From NCBI RefSeq assembly GCF_009834535.1, contig NC_045711.1, positions 25,048,001-25,112,000 on the forward strand: a stretch of DNA of 64,000 nt, read 5' to 3'. Positions 44,551 through 60,031 of the stretch are shown piece by piece; positions within the stretch are counted from its first letter, which is position 1; each line of letters begins with the position of its first letter. Below the pieces are notes generated by a model. It searched no databases. It worked only from the letters and a program-made list of their open reading frames with translations, and was not told where the DNA came from. This stretch comes from Camelus ferus (taxonomy: Eukaryota). A program made the position numbers and the translations under genes.

Positions 44551-44680
44551 GGTGTGGGGCTGGGGGGAGGATAGCTTAGGGGCAGAAAGCATGTTTAGCA
44601 TGCGCAAGGTCATGGGTTCAACCCCTTTAAATAAATAAACCTAATTCCCTCCGCCACCCCCAAAAAACTAAAAAAAATTT
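44551..44680 (+). mobile_element. Degenerate Vic-1-like SINE
   Basis: Diverged tRNA-Ala head and aaataaacctaatt tail. TAAAGATCTTT and TAAAAGACCTTT on the two sides. Confidence 0.78.
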
Positions 44681-45215
44681 TAAAAGACCTTTGAATGAGG
44701 TCACCTTTAAAAACTCCCATGATTGAGATGATTCAAGCCTAGTGGGTAACCACCCGCTCATTTGACCTATTGAGCATCTCTGGGGAGAGTAAGTAATTAC
44801 AGTTTGTCGGGGTGTTAAGTTTTCCTTCCTAATCATATAAAGCAGTTGCGAAATGGAGAATGAACAGCTATGCTTACAGGATTCTTCTAGTTTCACTAAA
44901 ACAGATTGGCCCTACAAACAGCTTGACCTGCTATGACTCTTTGGAGGTAGGAAACCTGCACCCGTTCTCTCAGTAATGGTGGAGCTCCTCCTAGGAAAGA
45001 GGTCCTTAATTTGTTTTTTGAGAGGTCCCTAATTTGTGTCACAACTTGTAACTTGGCTTTAGTTTTTTTATTCTATGAAGGTAAGTGCCTAGTCAGAAGG
45101 TGTTCTGAGGGATAGTTCTGCCAGCCATTTTGGTACTATTAATGATTTTAGAAAATTCTATGTAAACATGTTTGCTAAGGGTGTTGAATTTCCACTTAGA
45201 AAGCTTAGGGTTTAG

Positions 45216-45396
45216 GAGGGGGAGGGTATAGCTCAAATGGTAGAGCAGAGATGGAGCCAACCCCACAAGTTTAAGAAGTCTTGACACCTTATTAGAAGCC
45301 ACTTCTTAGCATGCATGATGTCTTGGGTTCAATCCCCAGTACCTCCTCTAAGAATAAATAAGTACTAAATAAACCTAATTACCACCGCCCCCCAAA
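45216..45396 (+). mobile_element. Vic-1-like SINE carrying a foreign insertion of about 60 nt
   Basis: 16-bp TSD AAAGCTTAGGGTTTAG at 45200-45215 and 45397-45412. The head is interrupted at about 45247-45304. Confidence 0.9.
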
Positions 45397-46189
45397 AAAG
45401 CTTAGGGTTTAGAAAGTTAAGTTCAATGATCTTAAAATGATGACGGCAGAAGAATCTAGCATTTCGTTGACAGTCTGGACTTTACACAGTTGTGTGACTT
45501 CACTGGCTTGGTAAAGGAGGTGAGAAAAAAACCAGCCCAGGACTCAGTACTTAATTGCTACTGCTGATTCTACTGCTTAAGCGTTTTAATATTCGATCAT
45601 CAGGCTCCCCTTCCTAATGTGTCTGTTACACTGGTTTGGAAGTACTAGGGTGCTCAACTGGGGAACTATAGACAGATGGGTCACAGACTCAAATCTGAAT
45701 CTAATTTGTAGGTAAATATATTTGCATTTGTCAGGAAATTGTGTTAAATCTACAAAACGAAAGCCAACAGAACAGCAATGTTCAGCATTTTCTAGGATAC
45801 AGCTGCCAATTCTAGAGAAGTGTCAGTTCCATAAAAAGGAGGACAGTCCGGTTTACCTGGTGGAAAATCGTCTCTTCCAAGTGAGATTGGATGATTAAAC
45901 TAGATGCTCCCATGTTTCAAGCAGACTCTGGTTTATGAACTCATCTCTGAGGAGCTCGGCTCACACGAACCAATGGTCTTCAACAGATTCATTTACTTCA
46001 AACAGCTACTGGGAGCCCCCATATTCAAGTCTTGGGTTGGTGCTGCCTTGACGCCGTGGGAACTCTGCTTTTGGGGTCCCCACAAGCATGGGGGCCAGGT
46101 ATGGATTCTAAGAAAGATGGAGCCAACCCCACCGGTTTTATAAGTCTTGACTCCTTGTTAGAAGCCGCTTCTCAGTATTTAGCACAGTC

Positions 46190-47498
<1,309 letters not shown>

Positions 47499-47556: not shown

Positions 47557-48031
<475 letters not shown>

Positions 48032-49520: not shown

Positions 49521-49882
49521 TCAGGGCTCCTGTGGGGCCTCAGTCCTTGGCAGTGGGATACCCAGAGCAGAGTGAGCCCCCCAGCTGCGGGCTTCAGCCA
49601 CCTGGCTTGGGGAACAGAAGTCTTCCAGGAAGATCTGGGCCAGGTTTCGGAGCCTTGCGTTGGCTGAGAGGGAGAAGCGCAGCATGCACTGGACCACGGG
49701 CACGGCCGTCAGCTCGGGGTGGGAGCCGGAGCCCGGCGAGCTCAGGTACATGATCGTGGTGACAGCGGACAGCACAGTCTCCTCGTTGGGGCTGGACAGG
49801 CAGTTGATGATGAGGGGGATGCCCCCTGTCTGCAGGATGTGCTCCTTGTTGGCCCTGTCTGAGCACAGGTTGCAGAGGCCTC
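49521..49882 (-). CDS. ARMC7: ARMC7 exon 3, coding part
   Basis: Acceptor ttccccag, [40 protein letters not shown]...EAPQEP* (362 nt). Confidence 0.96.
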
Positions 49883-50164
49883 CTGGGGAAGAGCAAGAGG
49901 GGTCTAGATGCCTCGGCCCTGGGCCTCCTCCCATCCCTCTTCTACCCATTCAGTCCCAGGGAAGGGCCCAGGCCTGAGAGAAGGTGGCCCAGGGACAAGG
50001 GATCCAAAGTCCACTGGGTTCTCCAGCCCTCCCTTTCAAGGTTCCAGAAAGGCCTGCCTCCCTGCCACTGCCTAGCCTTCTGGAAGTGGGCACTGATCCC
50101 TGTCCCTCTTGGCTCAGCCAGTTAAATGGCTGATATACTCTCCTTTTTTTTAAAGCAAAAAAGA

Positions 50165-59891: not shown

Positions 59892-60031
59892 GTGGGGAGG
59901 GTATAGCTCAGTGGCAGAGCTGCATGCTTAGCACACACAAGGTCCTGGGTTCAATCTCCAGTACCTCCATTAAATAAAGAAATAAACCTAATTACCCACC
60001 CCCTGGCCAAAGCCATAATTAAGGAAAAAAA
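59892..60031 (+). mobile_element. Vic-1-like SINE
   Basis: TSD AGTGATAAGT at 59881-59890 and 60033-60042. Confidence 0.9.

Follow-up and report, generated by a model that had tools for sequence, protein, structure and literature searches.

A 61-nt segment of single-copy DNA from just upstream of the NT5C gene recurs in the middle of a tRNA-derived SINE 866 nt away. We think it likely, with a probability of about 0.6, that this reflects a single ancient insertion-deletion copied from a local template, through template-switch or synthesis-dependent repair as in MMBIR, FoSTeS or serial slippage. This is also how the first-pass annotation had read the event itself, as one local insertion from the NT5C upstream region into the SINE, and every check that we ran supports that reading. 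The features on which the argument depends are listed here; "the window" is the whole 64-kb stretch of DNA that was analysed.

45200..45215, + strand: left target-site duplication (TSD), AAAGCTTAGGGTTTAG, a perfect 16-nt direct repeat with 45397-45412
45216..45248, + strand: SINE 5' part, with G-rich leader, acceptor and D arm (A box), ending GGTAGAGCA(G)
45249..45309, + strand: recipient 61-mer copy, of which 45249-45304 is foreign to the SINE
45305-45309, + strand: junction microhomology CTTAG, common to SINE and donor
45305..45396, + strand: SINE 3' part, with anticodon loop and 3' arm, T arm (B box GGTTCAATCCC), body and A-rich tail
45397..45412, + strand: right TSD, a perfect 16-nt copy of 45200-45215
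46115..46175, + strand: donor 61-mer copy, single-copy DNA on the shore of the NT5C CpG island, with two CpGs and a TTTT run kept
46176..46207, + strand: donor downstream flank, weakly collinear with the SINE 3' half
46515..46712, + strand: NT5C first coding exon, matching cytosolic 5'(3')-deoxyribonucleotidase structures (E 2.5e-29)

The two copies of the 61-mer

The segments at 45249-45309 and 46115-46175 lie on the same strand and are identical at 53 of 61 positions without gaps; the match had been noted before, and realignment confirmed it and found it unique in the window. Their first 18 letters are identical, and this 18-mer occurs twice in the 64 kb, where shuffled sequence is expected to give 0.03 occurrences. 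Within the window the pair is found with an E value of 1.4e-14 by permissive self-BLAST (word size 7) and 6e-12 by nhmmer --max; neither search found a third relative of the 61-mer in the 64-kb window, and no inverted copy was found there.

Four transitions and four transversions account for the eight sites at which the copies differ. Both donor CpGs (46133 and 46166) are missing from the SINE copy, just as the first-pass annotation had observed, and their loss would fit decay in a methylated SINE together with protection of the donor near the CpG island. The donor also has a TTTT run at 46136-46139, a Pol III terminator motif, which reads TTTA in the corresponding region of the SINE copy (45270-45272); the composite SINE has no T4 run before 45584.

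The recipient SINE

The recipient spans 45216-45396, with the A-rich tail ending at 45396, and belongs to a family with about 15 copies in the window. Its 5' part aligns with the 14 other window copies and is matched by the Rfam tRNA model through the D arm, and its two halves, which are contiguous in the family consensus, are enclosed by one TSD pair. The family alignment and the perfect 16-nt TSD thus bear out the earlier claim that the first copy is housed in a TSD-flanked, tRNA-like SINE. All 14 other window copies carry the uninterrupted core GAGCGCATGCTTAGCATGC, and what the recipient lacks by comparison with them is GCATG, between GGTAGAGC and CTTAG (about 5 nt, tRNA positions 26-30). 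Alignment with the family copies therefore agrees with the proposed replacement of GCATG and rejoining at CT(T/C)AG. It also agrees with the proposal that this is not the tRNA intron site, which is position 37/38; the patch lies upstream of the anticodon loop.

Canonical copies have a perfect 7-bp palindromic hairpin, TGCATGC-TTA-GCATGCA, at the patch site, and the patch took out its 5' arm. Six canonical window copies are called tRNA-Ala(AGC) by ARAGORN. The Rfam tRNA model still matches the composite SINE from end to end (45222-45347), at 28.8 bits against a gathering score of 29; the acceptor, D and T arms are preserved, and 62 nt stand in place of the anticodon arm. The element thus keeps its tRNA-like frame and both its A box and its B box, with about 55 nt added to the distance between them. 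When the composite and the donor were folded as DNA, neither gave structure beyond that of shuffled sequences.

We apply the name vic-1 to the recipient tentatively, on the strength of the SINEBase description, which gives vic-1 as the simple tRNA-derived SINE of camels (PMC3531059). Like vic-1, the recipient has a head resembling tRNA-Ala, followed by a short body and an A-rich tail, and is flanked by TSDs; it differs in the 56-nt foreign segment that replaces the 5' arm of the anticodon stem.

Two other copies of the family are mentioned here for completeness. One, at 44560-44665, lies 0.6 kb upstream of the recipient in the same orientation and is more decayed and partly deleted. The other, at 59897-59969, is read by ARAGORN as tRNA-Leu(TAG) and not as tRNA-Ala(AGC), presumably because an extra D-arm base shifts the anticodon register (GAGCTGCATG versus GAGCGCATG in the family).

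The donor and NT5C

The donor lies 340-400 nt upstream of the start codon of NT5C, where G+C content rises towards the CpG island. NT5C is on the plus strand, and its exons were searched one by one, not as a joined protein. In a search of PDB sequences exon 1 matches the cytosolic enzyme with an E value of 2.5e-29, against 1.7e-19 for the mitochondrial paralogue, and the last exon (47882-48028) gives 1.3e-25. An internal exon matches the Pfam NT5C family with 22.6 bits, and a Pfam search of exon 1 gave no match.

Directly after exon 1, at 46710-46973, is a GC-rich 33-nt tandem repeat of about 8 units with 92-99% identity. The exon-1 ORF (46515-47021) reads through this repeat in frame, and gene callers could over-extend the exon as a result. 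An ORF of 142 aa at 49521-49949, on the minus strand beyond the end of NT5C, may encode an armadillo-repeat protein (ARMC7-like).

Thousands of canonical relatives lack the segment that sets the SINE copy apart, while the donor is single-copy and no third source was seen, so the copying ran from unique DNA into the SINE. The same context (a single copy and no third copy) suggests that the donor carries the ancestral sequence. The donor region may have a faint likeness to an old MIR element, and a MIR origin of the donor would leave the overall reading unchanged.

The junctions

The 20 letters to the left of the two copies agree at only 4 positions, which is the chance level, so that this boundary is sharp. 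The left edge could equally be placed at 45247, 45248 or 45249, and the microhomology at this junction is 0-1 nt. At the right junction CTTAG in the SINE stands opposite CTCAG in the donor; with the next three letters included, CT(T/C)AG(C/T)AT, six of eight positions agree. Homology thus seems to have guided the right junction, whereas the left one is blunt.

Beyond the right junction the donor flank retains some likeness to the SINE. Ungapped identity is 16/33 (p 0.007), a homeology that was noticed after the fact and is modestly significant. Local alignment of the donor flank with a SINE consensus derived from the window scores 14-16, against 7-9 +/- 1.5 for shuffles. Because of this homeology the BLAST and nhmmer alignments extend to 46207/45341. 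A single longer copy that included the SINE 3' half was considered and is ruled out: identity falls from 53/61 in the 61-mer to about 20/33 in the flank (Fisher p 0.008), and the private variants of this SINE at 45319 and 45323 are absent from the donor flank, which also argues against a longer copy. The right flank is therefore placed outside the copy event, since its identity is significantly lower than that of the 61-mer.

Copy number in public contigs and reads

Among 20 public runs from 9 studies, under two camel organism labels, 85-92% of the sampled words of the region 45100-46300 are present. Contigs of three of these runs (X1, X4 and X16) and raw reads of a fourth (X22) were placed on this region. 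In X1 a 125-nt unitig (31-mer) covering 45218-45342 spans both junctions with no differences, at a depth of 12.7, compared with 9.5-10.8 on the unique flanks. The donor has a flat single-copy depth at a likeness of at least 85% in all three contig runs and under both organism labels, and no variant letters were found in the donor 61-mer in these runs. The T at 45304, which is specific to the composite, is at single-copy depth in X4 and X16 (both of organism B) and at about three times that depth in X1. In the public data no variant letters were reported for the patch at 45249-45303.

The SINE parts, by comparison, pile up to 10^5-10^6 depth units in the public runs, and thousands of reads and contigs jump from about 45245 to 45305 with CGCATG-type letters between, which is the canonical family sequence. 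The raw reads of X22 inform on the SINE family only and not on this locus: about 7000 fall on the SINE and none on about 950 nt of unique flank, from about 1.9 billion letters read, so that its effective sampling of unique DNA seems to be much below nominal.

One bin inside the patch, 45264-45304, has a contig depth 7-8 times the single-copy baseline of the flanks in all three contig runs, and this counts in favour of reading the 61-mer as a dispersed repeat, or the composite as an amplified SINE subfamily, with no local donor and recipient at all. The possible faint MIR likeness of the donor points the same way. About half of the excess is, however, accounted for by seven or eight canonical-SINE contigs (with G at 45304) that intrude a few letters into the bin, and the donor, the T at 45304 (in two runs) and the spanning unitig are all at 1x. 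Searches of the 64 kb by BLAST and nhmmer found no third copy, and within the patch no variant letters were reported. Copies of ancient repeats, moreover, differ by far more than 13%, and those repeats were extinct before this SINE family arose. Contig depth excludes a large composite subfamily or a young dispersed repeat, and we regard the repeat reading as a whole as highly improbable, although the excess depth may reflect a handful of extra patch copies besides the locus. The first-pass annotation had tied a local event to a genome-wide count of just two copies; as approximated by contig depth, the donor and the spanning unitig conform to this count, and a handful of further copies is still compatible with the data. 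Assembly artefact has nothing specific in its favour beyond the general difficulty of assembling SINEs, and the independent 31-mer unitig that spans both junctions exactly, along with the words recovered from the 20 runs, makes it scarcely credible.

Age of the patch

The two copies have diverged by 13% (JC 0.144). The SINE itself differs from the majority letters of its family, taken from the window alignment and the read pile-up, at about 7 of 118 sites (0.062, or about 6%). Copy-to-copy divergence is thus about twice the SINE-to-family divergence, so that the patch is about as old as the SINE; the ratio of the two ages is 1.1, with a 95% range of 0.35-3.6. By this comparison of letters the patch is old, roughly of the SINE's own age, and not recent. 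Generic mammalian rates make an age of tens of millions of years likely, in which case the patch is expected in llamas and alpacas too.

How the patch may have arisen

The insertion-deletion that we favour would begin with a break, or a stalled nascent strand, at the anticodon-stem palindrome of the SINE, which may itself have been the cause. The priming 3' end would be the one on the right, a minus strand ending in the complement of CTTAG, and it would pair out of register with the plus strand 866 nt downstream, at CTCAG, perhaps helped by the weakly SINE-like stretch behind that motif. About 57 nt would then be copied leftwards from the donor, the template probably being DNA and not RNA. Finally the new strand would come free and be attached to the SINE end on the left, where little or no homology is seen, and the 5' arm of the palindrome, about 5 nt, would be lost. 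The scheme follows the logic of the template-switch processes named above and of synthesis-dependent end joining (PMC8421209). Germline changes in which a templated insertion comes with microhomology and a small deletion form a described class (PMC8421209, PMC5110952). The tools that catalogue MMBIR-type insertions search chiefly for inverted templates no more than 100 bp away (PMC8421209), and a directly oriented copy with its template at 866 nt is less typical of the catalogued events. It also counts against this scheme that microhomology, at most 1 nt on the left, marks only one of the two switches as visibly guided by homology.

Two mechanisms had been put forward in the first-pass annotation, Pol theta-type break repair and a double template switch by L1 reverse transcriptase. 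Under the latter the patch would have been made during retrotransposition of the SINE: the enzyme would have left the SINE RNA at the anticodon loop, perhaps at a nick or a structured stretch of that tRNA-like RNA, taken some plus-sense nucleic acid close by as its template for about 57 nt, and then gone back to the SINE RNA, 5 nt beyond the point of departure. A co-insertional origin predicts a patch of the same age as the SINE, which agrees with the ratio of 1.1, but the range on that ratio is wide. The polarity also fits, as a nascent minus-strand cDNA ending at CTTAG pairs with the donor's CTCAG, and the geometry of TSD and tail makes the primer of that cDNA the minus strand of the same flank in which the donor lies. 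Plus-sense RNA across the donor would, however, be unexpected: the donor precedes the NT5C start, transcription upstream of promoters yields mostly antisense RNA, and Pol III read-through from the SINE would stop at the TTTT at 45584, before reaching the donor. Template-switch chimeras and double jumps of L1 have been described (PMC2104539), as has breakage of tRNA-like RNAs close to the anticodon loop in L1 chimeras (bioRxiv 10.1101/2025.02.02.635956). The known chimeras end on the second template, however, and none has been described in which the enzyme went back to the RNA that it had left, within 5 nt of the point of departure. On balance the L1 double switch seems unlikely. We consider rather unlikely a particular form of it, in which the cDNA end would have left a nicked or stalled SINE RNA, sampled the chromosomal plus strand about 0.7 kb downstream of the priming site, and resumed on the 5' half of the same RNA, still held by the cloverleaf; if true, it would be a natural case in which target-primed reverse transcription jumped to chromosomal DNA close by and then returned.

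Had a double-strand break in the SINE been repaired by classical Pol theta-mediated end joining (TMEJ), the patch would be a templated-insertion scar; this would explain why one junction shows microhomology, why little was lost at the break and why the insertion is a direct repeat with its template in cis. Scars of this kind measure 3-30 bp, with primary tracts that are rarely longer than 10 bp and are templated by sequence next to the break (PMC7165422). The patch, one uninterrupted tract of 57-61 nt with its template 866 nt away, lies outside this strict profile, which makes TMEJ quite unlikely here, and the template-switch or synthesis-dependent label fits the patch better than that of a Pol theta scar. 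The mechanisms proposed earlier, the Pol theta-type one in its strict form and the L1 switch, thus have similarly small weights. A SINE double-strand break could instead have been patched by a captured fragment of neighbouring cDNA or DNA, as in class 2 templated-sequence insertions. The patch has neither a TSD nor a poly(A) of its own, and it has a microdeletion and microhomology at its junctions, as those insertions do, but the patches described originate at distant loci, and an RNA origin is presumed for them (PMC5110952). A source only 866 nt away, in upstream DNA that looks untranscribed, points to templating in cis, and the captured-cDNA version needs a local sense transcript; capture is in our view very unlikely.

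Significance and comparison with known systems

As a repair or copying product the event is an ordinary one, a known kind of mutational scar of error-prone repair or copying. Through it, 57 nt of DNA from upstream of the promoter came to lie in a SINE at a distance of 1.2 kb from the start of NT5C; the patch shows no sign of function and is most likely neutral. Its interest is that of a clean, datable templated insertion in direct orientation and at kilobase range, fixed in a mammalian germline and with both junctions readable. The break site is in a perfect SINE palindrome, and such cases help to calibrate the long-term traces of repair and template switching. A systematic count of them might be worthwhile.

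Comparison with L1 chimeric retrocopies is informative, in that there too a retroposed element and foreign sequence lie joined between one pair of TSDs. They differ in carrying the second RNA at the 5' end, whereas here the patch is internal and the SINE resumes 5 nt on; the SINE's own 5' part (45216-45248) lies beyond the patch, and so the second template does not form the 5' end. The patch, moreover, corresponds to no known abundant small RNA. Pol theta (TMEJ) scars resemble the patch as products of break repair that leave a locally templated direct repeat and a small deletion, but they are short (3-30 bp) and break-adjacent (PMC7165422), compared with one long tract of 57-61 nt from 866 nt away. 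With class 2 templated sequence insertion polymorphisms the patch shares the lack of TSD and poly(A), a microdeletion, and microhomology at a presumed double-strand break; it differs in that its source is adjacent, where theirs are distant loci, thought to be reached via RNA (PMC5110952).

The MMBIR, FoSTeS and serial-slippage group has in common with the patch a short nearby template on the same chromosome, retention of the donor, microhomology at a switch point and a small loss, and events of the MMBIR/FoSTeS kind are known as germline variants (PMC8421209). The patch differs from most catalogued human events, which are inverted and within 100 bp, in being direct, 866 nt from its template and marked by microhomology at one junction only.
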